From sequence record NC_034620.1: a stretch of DNA of 36,391 bases; one strand, written 5' to 3'. The position numbers and the translations under genes are program-made. The notes beneath the pieces were generated by a model that ran no database searches, was not told where the DNA came from, and saw only the letters and a list, made by a program, of their open reading frames with translations. Positions 8,257-20,918 of the stretch are shown here, piece after piece. The number at the start of each line of letters is the position of its first letter. Position 1 is the stretch's first letter.

Positions 8257-8354
8257 TTCAATTTTATTATATGCAAATTACTTAGTAATAAAGTTTATGC
8301 AAAAAATCGAAATATATAAATATGTCATAATGTATGTTTATAAACTGAGGAAAA

Positions 8355-8516
8355 ATGATGGAGAAAGGGAAACCTGAAAGAGTTGTATTTGGAATTAATA
8401 TAGATAAAGAATTAAAGAGAAAATTAAAAGTATATTGTGCAAATAATGGCATAACATTAACTGAAGCTATAGAACAAGCATTGGAAGAATATCTACAAAA
8501 GAGGCAACCAAAATGA
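8355..8516 (+). CDS. svtR: RHH transcription regulator SvtR homolog (53 aa; not in ORF track)
   Basis: Hand-translated [53 protein letters not shown]; matches recalled SIRV1 SvtR ([15 protein letters not shown]...LT.AIE.A..EYLQKR). Confidence 0.9.
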
Positions 8517-8714: not shown

Positions 8715-8957
8715 TTATCTCTTCTTTTTTAATCTTTCAATTTCAGCTTTAAGTTCATCAATTTCATCATAAATATCTGCAAAGATATCATAAATTACTA
8801 CATATATAATTGCAAAAATTCCAGATGCAAAAAATGTTGATATTATAACTATTGGCATATTTTTTACAAGAATTCCTAATGACATGACTATTAAAGCTAA
8901 AGACATTAAAGCTAAAAAAATTAAGAAAACTATTATTTCACGAAATTCTCTTTCCAT
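8715..8957 (-). CDS. Small membrane protein, 2 TM plus coiled coil (80 aa)
   Basis: Two hydrophobic segments then DIYDEIDELKAEIERLK. Confidence 0.8.
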   Translation of the reverse strand: MEREFREIIVFLIFLALMSLALIVMSLGILVKNMPIVIISTFFASGIFAIIYVVIYDIFADIYDEIDELKAEIERLKKKR

Positions 8958-8969
8958 TTTTTTTCGTTT

Positions 8970-9245
8970 TTATTTTTCGTTTTCTGACAAATTTATTTCT
9001 TGTCTTCTTTCTCTTTTTAATCTTTCAATTTCTAGTTCAAGTTTATTAATTCTTGTATCTAAATCATCTACCAAATCTATTATCCAAGTAAAAATTATTG
9101 CTAACAAAATTGATGCAATTGCGGAATATAAAACTATATTTTGTAGATTTTTAGATAAAATTCCTTCAGAAAATATTAAAAGTATATTAAGTATTACAAT
9201 TGAAAGAATTATAGAAATATATAACCTAAAAGCTAATTTACCCAT
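8970..9245 (-). CDS. Small membrane protein, 2 TM plus coiled coil (91 aa), paralog of the previous gene
   Basis: Same architecture; DLDTRINKLELEIERLK. Confidence 0.8.
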   Translation of the reverse strand: MGKLAFRLYISIILSIVILNILLIFSEGILSKNLQNIVLYSAIASILLAIIFTWIIDLVDDLDTRINKLELEIERLKRERRQEINLSENEK

Positions 9246-9300
9246 ACTTTGTCATTCTTATTTTTCGTTTTCTGACAAATTTATAAGTTTCTATTTCAAG

Positions 9301-9435
9301 TCATTTTGAAGACTTAGGCTTATGTTCTTGATGAAGTTCATAATAAGCCTCAATTAACATTTTTCTGAATTCTTCTAAATCTTCTTTACTTTCAATTACT
9401 AAAAACTTTTCTCCATTTTTTTCTTCAATTCTCAT
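9301..9435 (-). CDS. Small charged protein (44 aa; not in ORF track)
   Basis: Hand-translated MRIEEKNGEKFLVIESKEDLEEFRKMLIEAYYELHQEHKPKSSK; TTTTTAAATGTC promoter upstream at about 9455-9467. Confidence 0.65.
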   Translation of the reverse strand: MRIEEKNGEKFLVIESKEDLEEFRKMLIEAYYELHQEHKPKSSK

Positions 9436-9491
9436 ATATGAATATTTGTTATTAGACATTTAAAAAACTTTACTTTATCTTTAATTCTGAA

Positions 9492-16729: not shown

Positions 16730-16801
16730 ATATCATCAATATAAAAATTTTTATATGACAAATTTAAACATATATATGTCATAATTTTTAAGTTTAATTT
16801 G

Positions 16802-17185
16802 ATGAATTTTAGACAATCTGGAAAATATTATGAATATAAGACACTTAATTATCTTGAAAAACATGGATACAAAGCTATAAGAATTCCAGTTTCTGGAACT
16901 GGAAAACAGCCAATTCCAGATATTATAGCAACTAAGGATAATACAATTTTTCCAATTGAAGTTAAATCAACTTCACAAAATTATGTTGTAGTTGATAATT
17001 TTCAAATTGATAAATTGTTTAAGTTCTGTGAGATATTCAATTTTTGTAATTGTAAACCGTTAATACTAGTTCATTATAAAAAATATAAAAATGTCATAAT
17101 ATATAATTTGAGTCAAGATGTCAGAACAAAAGAAAAAATCAAATTTACCTTCAGAGCTAACAGCAAAACTGTATTTAGCACTTGA
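16802..17185 (+). CDS. hjc: Holliday junction resolvase (Hjc family)
   Basis: GKYYE...GYKAIRIPVSG...PDIIA...IEVKS PD-(D/E)XK motifs. Confidence 0.95.
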   Translation: MNFRQSGKYYEYKTLNYLEKHGYKAIRIPVSGTGKQPIPDIIATKDNTIFPIEVKSTSQNYVVVDNFQIDKLFKFCEIFNFCNCKPLILVHYKKYKNVIIYNLSQDVRTKEKIKFTFRANSKTVFST

Positions 17186-17327
17186 CGATTTAACTATGGC
17201 ATTAGCTACTTGTGATAGTGAAGAAATTAGAAAAAGTGAAGTTTTTCAAAAAGCTCTAGAAGTTGTAAAAATTGTTAAAGAAATGAGAAATGCTAAAATA
17301 AAATCTGATGAAGAAGAAAAAGCTTAA
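17118..17327 (+). CDS. Conserved rudiviral protein (69 aa, ORF69 type)
   Basis: TAKLYLALDDLTMALATCD...KALEVVKIVKEM; overlaps hjc by 68 nt. Confidence 0.8.
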   Translation: MSEQKKKSNLPSELTAKLYLALDDLTMALATCDSEEIRKSEVFQKALEVVKIVKEMRNAKIKSDEEEKA

Positions 17328-17489
17328 ATTACTATTTTTTTCAAGTTAAAGAGATATCAAGTTTGATATAACTCTTTTCATCTAAAATTTTTTTCTTTAT
17401 AAATCTCGTTACACTCTTTCTTTGCGTAAAATTACGTTAAGAAAAATAAAAATATCGAGAGATAAGAGTTTTAAAAGATTTCTTGTAAA

Positions 17490-17640
17490 CTAACGCGTTT
17501 GGTTTATATACTCATCATTACAATTTCTTAGCAAGATGATGAGAAAAAATATCATCTGGAGAATTGAAAGAAAGAGATTATAAAAAATAGTGACAAAAAA
17601 TGTAAATAAAAAAATCGAAAAACAAAAAAGTTTTTACTTC
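17490..17640 (+). ncRNA. Candidate small non-coding RNA containing a CRISPR-repeat-like unit (boundaries approximate)
   Basis: Promoter-like GAGATAAGAGTTTTAAAA (17459-17476) and TTTATATA (17503-17510), no ORF, hairpin 17511-17543, and AAATATCATCTGGAGAATTGAAAG at 17547-17570. Confidence 0.3.
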
Positions 17641-17741
17641 TTCAGTTGAAAACTTCAAAAAAAGGAAGAAGATTTTTACATAAAACAATTTTTACTTTTA
17701 CAACAACATTTATAATTTTATAATATACACATGATAATAAT

Positions 17742-20700
17742 ATGAGTTTCTTATTAAATCTTGGAGATTTAGGTACATTTTTTTCAGATGAGCTAACAGC
17801 ATTAGAGAATTTTGCAAATTTCTTAAGCTCTGATTTTATAAACTTTTTTAGTGCAGTAGTTAATGATATTGAAAATGTTGTAAGTTTCATAGGTCAGGCA
17901 ATTAGTGATATTCCAACTTTTATGCAAAAAATTGCTAACAATTTCTTGACGATTTTGCAAAACTTTGTACAAACTGCAATTCCAGTAGTTTCAGGATTTT
18001 TAACATTTCTTGAACAACAAATTATAAATGTATTTCAAGATTTGTCTTCTTTAGCTTCTACATTTATAAATGATGCATATTCATTTTTACAAGGTGTTGT
18101 AAATGCATTTGCAAATTTAATAAGTACAATAGTTCAAGATTTTCTAAATAATTTTGGTCAAAATATGAAACATATTAGTTCTGCAATTTCTCAAGTTACT
18201 CAATTTTTAACTCCATTTATCGCTCCAGTCACTTTAGGAAAATTTTTGCCAGCAATAATAGATAAATTAGCTGAAATTTTGCCAGAAGTTGAAATTGATT
18301 TAGCGCCAGTTGGCTTAGGCGGAAAAATTCCAATTAACTTTGGAGAAATTGTAAAAGCGTTTGCTGAAACTTCAGTTGACTTTTTAAATGAAGTAAGAGT
18401 AGAAATACAAACTACGCTTAAGGAGTTTATAAAAGAGCCATTTATTTCAGATTTTAAAATTACTGCGAGAGAAATATTTAATGAAATTGGTCTTGGAGAT
18501 TTACCATTTGCAGATCCTCCATTTAGATTAATTGCAAATTGGGTCGGTTCAAGATCATTTTCTGAAATTAAAGACCATCTTAAAGAAACAATTCTATTGA
18601 CTGGATTTCCAGCATGGTTTACTGATGCTTATCTAGAATCTCCAGTTGATGATTTTATACCAAGAAATCCGTTATTTAGACCAGTAAATATAAGAGATGT
18701 AATTTTAGCTTCACAATATGGAATTTTAGACTTTAGTGCAGTTTCTCAATATGCAGAAAATAATTTAATAACTCCAAAAACTGCAAAATTAATGTATCAA
18801 AATGAGACTGCGAGACTTTTACAAAGAGCAGTTGAAGAGGGAATTAGACAATTTGTAGTTACTCCTGAAAAAGCTTATCAAGAAATAATACAAAATGTTA
18901 ATTTAGCTGGTAAAGATTTATATCTAAAAGTTTTCTCTCTTGAGTACAATTATTCAGTTCAAAGAATTGTTAGACAGTTTTTAAGATCACTTTTATCAAG
19001 AGCTTTAACTAATTTTGGAAGACCATACATTGATCTAAAATTCCTAGAATCAACAGTTCAAAAATTATTTAAAGAACTAAATTATCCTGAAGAAGTTCAA
19101 AATGTTTTCAACATAATGATTGAACAATCTCAAATAGTTTATACTAATCAATTACTTTTGACACAATTAGAACAACTTACCAGATTAGGAATATTTGACG
19201 AAAAGAAAGTAAAAGCAGAGTTAAAAGCTAATAACTTTAATGAACAGATAGCACTTACAATTTTGAATTATGAACTTCAATATGTACAATTACAATATAT
19301 CTTGAAACAATACCAATTCATGTTACAAAATTATATTATTAGTACAAAAGATGCAGAAAATCAATTAAAGAAATTAGGCTTTGATTCATCTATAATTTCT
19401 GAGATAATTTTTGAATATCAAACAGCTCCATTAACAAAATATCAAATTAGCCAAATTGAAAGTTTGGCTAGAAAAGGATATTTATCAGTTGATGAAATTA
19501 AAAAACAATTACATTCATTAGGCATAATTAAGGAATTTGAAGACATATTTATCAATTACACAAGTCAAGAAATTCAAATATCAACAACTTTAAGTATTGT
19601 AAAAGAACAATTAAGAAACTTCCTAATAGATTCGAAAACTGTAGAAAATGAATTAAAAGCATTAAAAATTAATGATTATTTAATAAATGAGATAATTCAA
19701 GAAGAATATAACATAAATATATCTAAATTACAATTATCATATTTAGAAACTTTAGCTAAGAATTTATATTATGATCAAAATCAATTAGCCGGAGAATTAG
19801 CAAAAATTCTAAAAGATAAAACTGCAATAGATCTTTATACTCAAAAATTCTATTATGAATATGTATTTCCAAAAATTGTCAGTTATCACGTTAGTTTAGC
19901 AAGACATGGAATTTCCTCAAATATTTCAAACTTGCCAAAAGAAATTGTAGATTATGAAATTAATCCAGAAATCCAAATTTTCCAACTTACAACAGAATTA
20001 GAATATATAAAATCATTATTAAAAGATTTACAAATAACTCCAACAAATGCTGAAAACGAGTTAATAAAATTAGGAATGCAAAAAGATTTAGCTAATTTAT
20101 TTGTGCAAACTTATATTCCAACACTTTACAGTTTACATACAATTATTGGAAATATTATAGAAGGTCAACTTTACAAAGTTGGAAAAATTCCAATTAATTT
20201 AGGAAATGCAGAAACGCAATTAAGACAATTAGGAATTCCAGAAAACCAAATAAAAATAATTATTGAACAATATGAATCTTCATTTGGCTTAGAAATTTGG
20301 AGAAAATACTTACCTTCACTTTCTCAAATTGAAACTGCAATAAAATATAACTTTCCAATTAACCAATTAGTTGAATATTCATTTATACCATCTGAATTTC
20401 TTAACTTATATTCTAATTTATATCAATATGAATTAATTGGACAATATGTACAATCTTTGAGAAATGAATATATTCAACTTCTCACTTATGGAGTTCAAAA
20501 TATACAATTAGAGAATTTGCTAAAACAATATGGAATAAATCAAGTCCTATTAGAAGTTTTCAAATTATCAGCACAAATTAGAAAATTATTAATGGCTTAT
20601 CAAGAACTTTACATCACTCCATCTAAAGCACTCACAATTAGCGAATATATTAGCAATCCAAATCAACTTTTACAAAAAGTATTTTCCGAATTTCAAGTAC

Positions 20701-20918
20701 CAACAGATTTACAAAATACTTACTTAGAATATGCAAGAAATAGGAGACTTAGAACGTACGTAAATGAAATAATTTCAACAATCAATTTGTTATTTGAAAG
20801 ACAAAAAATAGATCTAAATACGGCTCAACAATACTTACAACAATTAAAACAATATGGTTTAACAAATGAAGAAATTCAATTAATCTTACTTAACTGGCAA
20901 TTAAGAAGTAACTATTAA
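17742..20918 (+). CDS. Large virion terminal-fibre protein (SIRV2 ORF1070/gp38 type, 1058 aa)
   Basis: Largest ORF; N-terminal amphipathic/coiled region, repeated helical units; conserved position after hjc. Confidence 0.92.
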   Translation: MSFLLNLGDLGTFFSDELTALENFANFLSSDFINFFSAVVNDIENVVSFIGQAISDIPTFMQKIANNFLTILQNFVQTAIPVVSGFLTFLEQQIINVFQDLSSLASTFINDAYSFLQGVVNAFANLISTIVQDFLNNFGQNMKHISSAISQVTQFLTPFIAPVTLGKFLPAIIDKLAEILPEVEIDLAPVGLGGKIPINFGEIVKAFAETSVDFLNEVRVEIQTTLKEFIKEPFISDFKITAREIFNEIGLGDLPFADPPFRLIANWVGSRSFSEIKDHLKETILLTGFPAWFTDAYLESPVDDFIPRNPLFRPVNIRDVILASQYGILDFSAVSQYAENNLITPKTAKLMYQNETARLLQRAVEEGIRQFVVTPEKAYQEIIQNVNLAGKDLYLKVFSLEYNYSVQRIVRQFLRSLLSRALTNFGRPYIDLKFLESTVQKLFKELNYPEEVQNVFNIMIEQSQIVYTNQLLLTQLEQLTRLGIFDEKKVKAELKANNFNEQIALTILNYELQYVQLQYILKQYQFMLQNYIISTKDAENQLKKLGFDSSIISEIIFEYQTAPLTKYQISQIESLARKGYLSVDEIKKQLHSLGIIKEFEDIFINYTSQEIQISTTLSIVKEQLRNFLIDSKTVENELKALKINDYLINEIIQEEYNINISKLQLSYLETLAKNLYYDQNQLAGELAKILKDKTAIDLYTQKFYYEYVFPKIVSYHVSLARHGISSNISNLPKEIVDYEINPEIQIFQLTTELEYIKSLLKDLQITPTNAENELIKLGMQKDLANLFVQTYIPTLYSLHTIIGNIIEGQLYKVGKIPINLGNAETQLRQLGIPENQIKIIIEQYESSFGLEIWRKYLPSLSQIETAIKYNFPINQLVEYSFIPSEFLNLYSNLYQYELIGQYVQSLRNEYIQLLTYGVQNIQLENLLKQYGINQVLLEVFKLSAQIRKLLMAYQELYITPSKALTISEYISNPNQLLQKVFSEFQVPTDLQNTYLEYARNRRLRTYVNEIISTINLLFERQKIDLNTAQQYLQQLKQYGLTNEEIQLILLNWQLRSNY

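Follow-up and report, generated by a model that had tools for sequence, protein, structure and literature searches.

Sulfolobus islandicus rod-shaped virus 9 (SIRV9; NC_034620.1/KY744228.1) is a Usarudivirus from Norris Geyser Basin, Yellowstone, whose 36,391-bp genome constitutes the window, that is, the whole stretch of DNA analysed here. Its largest internal gene-free stretch, pointed out in a first-pass annotation made from the sequence alone and confirmed in the RefSeq annotation, is a non-coding intergenic region of 414 bp (17328-17741) between ORF39 and ORF40 (ORF, open reading frame). ORF39 (17118-17327, plus strand), the final gene ahead of the gap, is a homologue of SIRV2 ORF69, as indicated by annotation and by synteny with SIRV1 and SIRV2, and ORF40 (17742-20918, plus strand) is the homologue of SIRV1/2 ORF1070, a minor structural protein of the terminal fibre (tail fibre). 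SIRV8 and SIRV9 are 99.9% identical over the gap region, and positions 17325-17572 are orthologous to the intergenic region between SIRV2 gp37 and gp38 (71% identity, E 9e-32). Within the gap lies a 24-nt unit, AAATATCATCTGGAGAATTGAAAG (17547-17570, plus strand), that resembles the repeats of the clustered regularly interspaced short palindromic repeat (CRISPR) arrays of the host and ends in the core AATTGAAAG (17562-17570, plus strand). The core equals the last nine bases of the host repeat and includes both the 5' handle of CRISPR RNA (crRNA) and the core of the DNA motif of Cbp1, a Sulfolobales protein that coats CRISPR-repeat DNA. We see an even chance that the unit is a virus-borne, non-canonical Cbp1 site set in a regulatory module ahead of the tail-fibre gene.

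A repeat-like unit in a conserved intergenic module

The elements quoted in the first-pass annotation were all recovered in place, among them the promoter-like sequence GAGAGATAAGAGTTTTAAAA at 17457-17476 and the unit itself. The repeat with which it had compared the unit, GATAATCTACTATAGAATTGAAAG, proved to be the published Mutnovsky A1/A2 repeat, from which the Yellowstone host repeat, GCTAATCTACTATAGAATTGAAAG, differs by one base (PMC6452263). A match to the Mutnovsky repeat at 17 of 24 positions, with the last 11 bases (AGAATTGAAAG) identical, had been claimed and stands; the first 15 bases, on the other hand, match no better than chance. Against the local Yellowstone repeat, 16 of 24 positions agree, again with the last 11 bases identical, and across variants the first 15 bases agree with the host repeat at 3-8 positions, which is chance level. 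No antisense copy of the repeat was found within the module, the best candidates matching 11-15 of 24 positions, inside the shuffle range.

Within a single genome, the repeat match is not significant. The 10-mer GAATTGAAAG (17561-17570) has one copy in the genome against 0.29 expected and is present in 28 of 100 shuffles. The caution that ATTGAAAG also occurs in coding sequence was justified, there being 10 genome copies against 5 expected; the other copies that were checked (7412, 8734, 9022, 9389) are inside annotated genes, two of them as EIER codons. One region across ORF20, ORF21 and ORF22 (8715-9459, minus strand) holds four copies within 650 bp, three of them on the minus strand, and this cluster explains most of the genome-wide excess. 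For two of the minus-strand copies, the encoded residues are the EIER of an (E)IERLK(K/R) motif located at the C terminus of both ORF20 and ORF21, which are paralogous small hydrophobic proteins; the third is inside ORF22, and the fourth copy (9199, plus strand) is antisense within ORF21. The repeat match is nevertheless more than chance, because it is conserved at a fixed position in related viruses.

We examined this conservation in a gap alignment of eight US isolates together with the regions upstream of ORF1070 in 31 IMG/VR loci and in SIRV1, SIRV2 and SIRV3, a set that collapses to 22 distinct variants from the Icelandic SIRV1-3, the US SIRVs and metagenomic rudiviruses. The variants share a common architecture, consisting of a block P1 (GATAAGAGTTTAAAAAGATTTCTTGTAAA), a block P2 (TTTATATACTCATCATTACAATTT), 36 semi-variable bases in eight alleles and then the position of AATTGAAAG. 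This 115-nt module (17458-17572) aligns without gaps, showing zero indels among the 22 variants, and the ORF1070 proteins of the viruses that bear it are only ~71-100% identical. The spacing from ATCATTACAAT to ATTGAAAG is exactly 49 nt wherever a locus has both; AATTGAAA is present in 18 and the full AATTGAAAG in 17 of the 22 variants, and conservation ends exactly at the 3' end of the repeat. Further downstream, a run of five to seven thymines (T5-T7) begins 16 nt past the core in 14/22 variants, and the core lies at one of only three distances (63, 87 or 171 nt) from the ORF1070 start codon. The proposal of a solitary CRISPR-repeat-like unit in non-coding DNA, for which conservation in sibling genomes had been named as a check, is therefore borne out in that 9-11 bases at the 3' end are kept across this set.

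Block P1 (17457-17489, plus strand) joins a purine-rich stretch resembling a transcription factor B recognition element (BRE) to TTTTAAAA (17469-17476) and then to a conserved GATTTCTTGTAAA, and is found in 22/22 variants; from archaeal promoter geometry, its transcription start would be expected near 17499. Block P2 (17503-17526, plus strand) comprises an TTTATATA box and CTCATCATTACAATTT, and ACAATTT (17520-17526) is the only run of at least five bases that is invariant in all 22 variants. The semi-variable segment that follows (17527-17561) has a fixed length, eight alleles and no indels. What had been described as an arm-style promoter with no ORF behind it is indeed promoter-like and ORF-free, as judged by the conserved blocks and by the stops in its frames, but the arm-style label was not upheld, no convincing second copy having been found in the window, the genome arms included. 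Likewise, the stem proposed between CTCATCAT (17511-17518) and ATGATGAG (17536-17543) lies at those coordinates but is confined to one allele and is not conserved. Stop codons occur in all six frames of the module in 20-22 of the 22 variants, and a small ORF coded by the module was rejected on that ground; a 15-aa ORF, MMRKNIIWRIERKRL, is not conserved and was rejected as a gene.

Outside the module, an imperfect, operator-like palindrome, AGAGATATCAAGTTTGATATAACTCT (17350-17375, no strand assigned), shows no more than partial conservation among the US SIRVs, and the T-run terminating the upstream operon sits just 5' of it. SIRV2 and other variants have a different palindrome, of the GGGTTAACCC type, at the equivalent position, so that the gap may begin with an operator specific to each lineage. 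A conserved box, TTTATAAA (17396-17403, plus strand), is a putative TATA-like element. Past the unit, the segment at 17571-17670 holds 84 additional bases that are peculiar to the SIRV8/9/10 type, and local duplications account for part of it, 17604-17625 being a copy of 17444-17465 and 17624-17644 a copy of 17682-17702. After the SIRV9 unit, a T5 run is first reached at ~17631-17635, and the first 38 nt after the core are completely different in SIRV9 and SIRV10 (L004). The proximal TATA box of the tail-fibre gene, TTTATAAT (17709-17716, plus strand), lies in surroundings that are almost invariant in the eight US isolates. The isolate V60 (L010, ~945-1190) has an extra insert of ~240 bp, with short inverted repeats of its own, between the ORF69 homologue and the module, and the metagenomic contigs L022 and L030 carry an SIRV10-type upstream allele together with an SIRV9-type downstream segment, mosaics that suggest recombination with a breakpoint at AATTGAAAG.

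The unit had also been placed in the slot of acrIII-1, a gene said to be missing from this genome. Its absence was corroborated, as tblastn revealed no DUF1874/acrIII-1 homologue in the window and no remnant of a DUF1874 gene in the gap. The placement had to be abandoned: SIRV1, SIRV2 and SIRV3 carry the same module between the DUF1874 gene and ORF1070, and because they hold it downstream of that gene, the unit is not a replacement for acrIII-1. The US viruses simply lack the DUF1874 gene, and their conserved intergenic module comes directly after ORF69. A preprint describes SIRV2 gp37 as a non-essential middle/late protein with no anti-CRISPR (Acr) action in native infection. Close by, an intact ORF at 16799-17185 (plus strand) encodes a 128-aa homologue of the Holliday junction resolvase Hjc and is unannotated in the SIRV9 RefSeq record; an Hjc homologue is annotated in SIRV4, 5, 10 and 11.

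Correspondence with Cbp1 sites

In 2024, Blombach et al. mapped Cbp1 genome-wide and reported that, besides arrays, it binds single non-canonical sites with a 21-bp repeat-like motif, in which conservation peaks in a 6-bp core close to where the repeat ends on its 3' side (PMC10883916). In the 25-nt repeat, binding was lowered by the substitutions A6C/T7G, A17C/A18C, T19G/T20G and A22C/A23C, and not by substitution of A13/T14 (PMC10883916). A strong site in ISC1229, TAAGATTGCCACGTGAATTGAAAGG, has little in common with the repeats beyond A5-T6 and GAATTGAAAG (PMC10883916). Cbp1 was also present on the promoters of CRISPR arrays 3-5 of S. islandicus LAL14/1, whose repeats are unrelated, and it was found to damp promoters near its sites and to raise the processivity of RNA polymerase on templates that bear them (PMC10883916).

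A per-position profile of the 22 variants reveals that match to the host repeat and conservation coincide at unit positions 5-7 (A 0.91, T 0.64, C 0.82) and 14-24, with no match to the host repeat at positions 1-4 and 8-13. SIRV9 reads A5-T6-C7 at positions 5-7, and SIRV1-3 have A-A at the A-T positions of Cbp1. As would be expected of a Cbp1 site, the SIRV9 unit has A-T at the equivalents of A6/T7, a free middle of the repeat and, inside GAATTGAAAG at 17561-17570, the AATTGAA motif of the Cbp1 core. On sequence comparison, the conserved viral positions follow the same pattern as the Cbp1 requirements and the ISC1229 site. When all 72,736 genome windows are scored against a crude profile derived from four established Cbp1 sites, the SIRV9 unit comes second.

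Binding data from SIRV2 point to the orthologous region. The peak list from Cbp1 chromatin immunoprecipitation sequencing (ChIP-seq) of SIRV2-infected LAL14/1 contains eleven SIRV2 peaks, of which the strongest (8.4-fold) lies at AJ344259.1:20351 and the others reach 3.0-5.4 (PMC10883916, supplement). The SIRV2 unit (20400-20423, core 20415-20423), which is the best repeat-like window inside the SIRV2 module, is in the same 277-bp intergenic region as this strongest peak. The chance of the top SIRV2 peak falling within 64-80 bp of the unit is ~0.004, and that of its falling within the 277-bp region, by length, is ~0.008.

Several observations weigh against a Cbp1 site. The ChIP data come from SIRV2 in an Icelandic host, not from SIRV9; the authors report high background in infected samples, provide the peak list for quality control only and leave the viral peaks undiscussed (PMC10883916). 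Between the summit, which sits over the two TATA-like boxes, and the core downstream of it there are 64 bp, a distance within the +/-80 bp motif-search window that the authors used for one strain and outside the +/-50 bp window used for another (PMC10883916). The SIRV2 unit ranks only 88 with the crude Cbp1 profile, and three further copies of AATTGAAAG in SIRV2 coding DNA (21964, 23064, 23376) have no peak; because these copies are unbound and the SIRV2 unit as a whole fits poorly, the core by itself does not suffice. Nor is the core universal, since in four metagenomic variants an A replaces the G at unit position 20, giving AATTAAAAG, and in one a C replaces the G at position 24, giving AATTGAAAC. 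A group of related, in some cases close, metagenomic rudiviruses lacks the module, and none like it was found upstream of the ORF1070 homologues of SBRV1, SSRV1, MRV1, SRV, ARV1-3 and SMRV1. A loose module pattern run against IMG/VR yielded an overwhelming number of chance matches.

At the SIRV2 termini (L366, 1121-1155 and 34296-34330), where ORF83a/b begins, TCGAGAGATA comes immediately after AATTGAAAG, two elements that are ~95 nt apart in the module; ChIP reads at these termini may be multi-mapping.

The same data can be read as those of an ordinary viral operator or promoter with no link to CRISPR, in which the conserved blocks, AATTGAAAG among them, would be sites of viral or host transcription factors, for example the RHH (ribbon-helix-helix) repressor SvtR, acting on the late ORF1070. 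The identity with the end of the repeat would then be coincidental, and the ChIP enrichment of Cbp1 would reflect background over open, AT-rich promoter DNA. We consider this possible, if on balance improbable. According to a review (PMC5569661), the SvtR site of highest affinity in SIRV1 is ~80 nt upstream of the TATA box of gp30 (ORF1070), a distance that puts it inside the module, roughly in the semi-variable segment 17527-17561. Strictly fixed spacing is typical of protein-DNA architecture, the 10-mer match has a 28% chance of arising somewhere in the genome, and both the lack of binding at the other SIRV2 copies of AATTGAAAG and the noise of the infected-cell ChIP samples speak for an operator as well. 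Yet the published SvtR consensus, ATnnTTCAAnAnnnnnAAAATG, does not occur in the intergenic module of SIRV1 (L003, 2368-2644) or of SIRV9 with up to 3 mismatches allowed; its sole match in the SIRV9 gap (17650-17671) is in the insert, outside the unit and the conserved blocks, and elsewhere it matches at chance level. Moreover, the 9-mer and the partial matches at positions 5-7 and 14-15 follow the host repeat and the Cbp1 requirement profile, and it is in this short intergenic region that the strongest viral Cbp1 peak is found.

SIRV9 has an SvtR homologue, ORF18 (8358-8516, plus strand), whose upstream region (8257-8357) contains TTTATGCAAAAAATCG. This sequence resembles an A-rich ATG(C/A)(A/G)AAAAAAT segment in the variable part of the module, and the two may represent a shared SvtR operator.

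If Cbp1 does occupy the module, the order of its elements, with two promoter-like blocks, a fixed 36-nt spacer, AATTGAAAG and, in most relatives, a T-run 16 nt later, would allow it to act in two ways. By recruiting Cbp1 to this control region, the virus would shape transcription ahead of the tail-fibre gene, with Cbp1 damping the adjacent upstream promoter-like blocks, helping RNA polymerase through the T-run into ORF1070, or both. The timing or level of fibre-gene expression could in this manner be tied to a host CRISPR-chromatin protein, and we infer that Cbp1 on the viral module would tune local transcription as it does in the host. We regard a decoy function, in which Cbp1 would be drawn away from the host arrays, as less likely, since infection brought no visible change in its occupancy of the arrays at 2 h (PMC10883916). 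The CRISPR mimicry by the unit is real, and its link to the host CRISPR apparatus is supported.

RNA-level roles and the mini-array alternative

The nine bases that form the Cbp1 core in DNA are also the crRNA handle in RNA, and for this reason an RNA role could coexist with a Cbp1 site. The first-pass annotation had suggested an RNA anti-CRISPR, in the form of a crRNA mimic for I-A or III-B complexes. Under this reading, the module would be a small non-coding RNA (ncRNA) gene whose transcript would be cut 8 nt before the end of the unit by a Cas6 of relaxed specificity, leaving the AUUGAAAG handle and a short tail; taken up by complexes of type I-A or III-B, the product would serve there as a decoy or guide. 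Two conserved BRE/TATA-like blocks facing the unit with no ORF behind them, a T5-T7 run past the handle of the kind that is the usual archaeal terminator signal, and the halt of conservation exactly at the 3' end of the repeat all fit such a gene. There is also a precedent in S. solfataricus ncRNA60, an RNA that abounds in Csm complexes and whose precursor, repeat-like but without the hairpin, is cleaved by Cas6-3 (PMC4041471).

Other features fit an RNA mimic poorly. Sulfolobus Cas6-1 recognises the hairpin and loop of the repeat (PMC4041471), and in the viral unit the 3-bp hairpin (positions 6-8/14-16) forms 0-3 pairs depending on the allele (2/3 in SIRV9, 3/3 in SIRV10, 0-1 in SIRV1-3 and SIRV5), with loop bases, those read by Cas6-1, unlike those of the host. 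RNAalifold gave no consensus pairs on either strand in four sub-windows, and no Rfam family fits even at a permissive threshold. The tail past the handle is only ~20 nt in most variants, and the 38-nt 'spacers' that follow the unit in SIRV9 and SIRV10 have no match in sequenced viruses, hitting only their own loci among 50,697 phage/virus records. Furthermore, the conservation of positions 5-7 is explained by Cbp1 and not by the handle. An RNA anti-CRISPR is thus unlikely and, as the sequences now stand, less likely than DNA binding by Cbp1. Less probable still is a dual-level arrangement in which the unit, as a leaderless mimic of the junction between leader and first repeat, would capture Cbp1 on DNA and at the same time, through transcription from the two promoters upstream, give rise to a short decoy RNA with the AUUGAAAG handle for I-A/III-B complexes. 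A C/D box small RNA (sRNA) was rejected, as the best snoRNA-like Rfam matches, at 21.5 and 16.2 bits and E > 1, fell far short of the gathering thresholds of 40-45, and an ATGATGA box is present in one allele only.

A mini-CRISPR array at this locus was rejected as well, there being a single unit with a 16-17/24 match and neither a second repeat, nor a leader, nor a spacer target. A related explanation, which we deem very unlikely, is that the unit is a decayed relic, with no present function, of a virus-borne mini-array or stand-alone repeat of the kind found in SPV1/2 and ATV. Sulfolobales viruses do carry such elements (PMC6858448; SPV1 locus L097), and the first 15 bases of the unit look degenerate. 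A relic, however, would have drifted, and the core and its spacing have been kept across viruses whose flanking non-coding DNA is ~71% identical, which weakens this explanation; in addition, there is one unit only. The search for a leader relied on a real Yellowstone array and leader (L109) and on the SPV1 mini-arrays (L097), both taken from IMG/VR. The region upstream of the unit has no similarity to the host leader, with a local alignment score of 19 against a shuffle mean of 21.1, and its score to one of the two SPV1 leaders is weak and unconvincing, being reached by 13/300 shuffles; the host leader and an SPV1 leader align with a score of 29, which 2/300 shuffles equalled or exceeded.

A scan of genome contigs with the S. 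islandicus/S. solfataricus repeat pattern returned 54 chance single matches and no Sulfolobales array, such arrays being perhaps masked or missing there. When covariation of the AATTAAAAG variants with host repeats was checked, the loose pattern used was swamped by chance matches, and the one genuine array recovered was that of the metagenome contig Ga0209225_1024287 (L322), which has 38 repeats of 24 nt, GAATCTCACAAAGAGAATTAAAAG, ending in ATTAAAAG. This handle variant is that of four metagenomic rudivirus modules (L015, L031, L038, L039). The spacers of the array match no rudivirus or phage record, and its repeat is absent from IMG/VR.

Significance and comparison with known systems

To date, Cbp1 has been regarded as a host factor of CRISPR arrays, its additional sites in transposons being a puzzle. 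If the unit is a Cbp1 site, a lytic archaeal virus would have borrowed a part of the host CRISPR machinery, either for the control of viral genes or as a means of sensing or disturbing the state of the CRISPR arrays, and the old puzzle of an SvtR/gp30 control region that reaches so far upstream would also be explained. If the RNA-level role holds too, RNA anti-CRISPRs would be extended to archaea, and a dual-level mimic would be the first RNA anti-CRISPR of an archaeal virus. With cbp1 deletion strains, methods for editing the virus genome and ChIP data already in existence, SIRV2 and S. islandicus offer a direct way to examine a role for Cbp1. Stand-alone repeats and mini-arrays in Sulfolobales viruses are already known, as are non-canonical Cbp1 sites in host transposons and promoters; in the literature we found no account of a virion gene whose regulatory module contains a Cbp1-type site made of part of a repeat and conserved in two genera of rudiviruses.

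The RNA anti-CRISPRs (Racrs) of bacteriophages, reportedly described by Faure et al. in 2019 and Camara-Wilpert et al. in 2023, are said to be solitary repeat units. Racrs keep the structure of the repeat, so that Cas proteins bind the RNA. The SIRV9 unit is similarly solitary, lies behind promoter-like sequence on a virus genome and belongs to a repeat family used by the host; unlike in Racrs, its Cas6 hairpin and loop are unconserved, and the pattern of conserved positions suits a DNA-binding protein.

ncRNA60 (Sokolowski et al. 2014, PMC4041471) shares with the unit a non-CRISPR locus, partial likeness to the repeat, the lack of a hairpin and an expected crRNA-like 5' handle. In contrast to the unit, it is encoded by the host and retains the five loop bases of the AB repeat in full, and its cleavage by Cas6-3 and presence in Csm are experimental (PMC4041471). 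The mini-arrays of SPV1, SPV2 and ATV (Medvedeva et al. 2019, PMC6858448) are, like the unit, repeat sequences in intergenic viral DNA without cas genes. They have full-length repeats nearly identical to those of the host, often a host-like leader, and spacers that target rival viruses (PMC6858448), whereas the SIRV9 unit has only 9-11 repeat-like bases and no leader similarity, second repeat or target.

The operator of SvtR (SIRV1 gp08; Guilliere et al. 2009, as given in the review PMC5569661) is in the same intergenic region as the unit, has the same target gene and acts at a distance from the proximal TATA box. It differs from the unit in mapping, approximately, to the variable part of the module and not to AATTGAAAG, and in having a consensus that does not match the unit.

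Closest to the unit are the non-canonical Cbp1 sites of ISC1229 and of the promoters of arrays 3-5 in LAL14/1 (PMC10883916), which are likewise single, outside arrays and in some cases in promoters. In both, the likeness to the repeat is mainly in the 3' core GAATTGAAAG and in A-T at positions 5-6 (PMC10883916). The ISC1229 sites flank or lie inside a transposon (PMC10883916), whereas the SIRV9 unit is on a virus genome, and, unlike the host sites, the viral candidate is conserved in two genera of rudiviruses, its distance to the promoter-like blocks being fixed.

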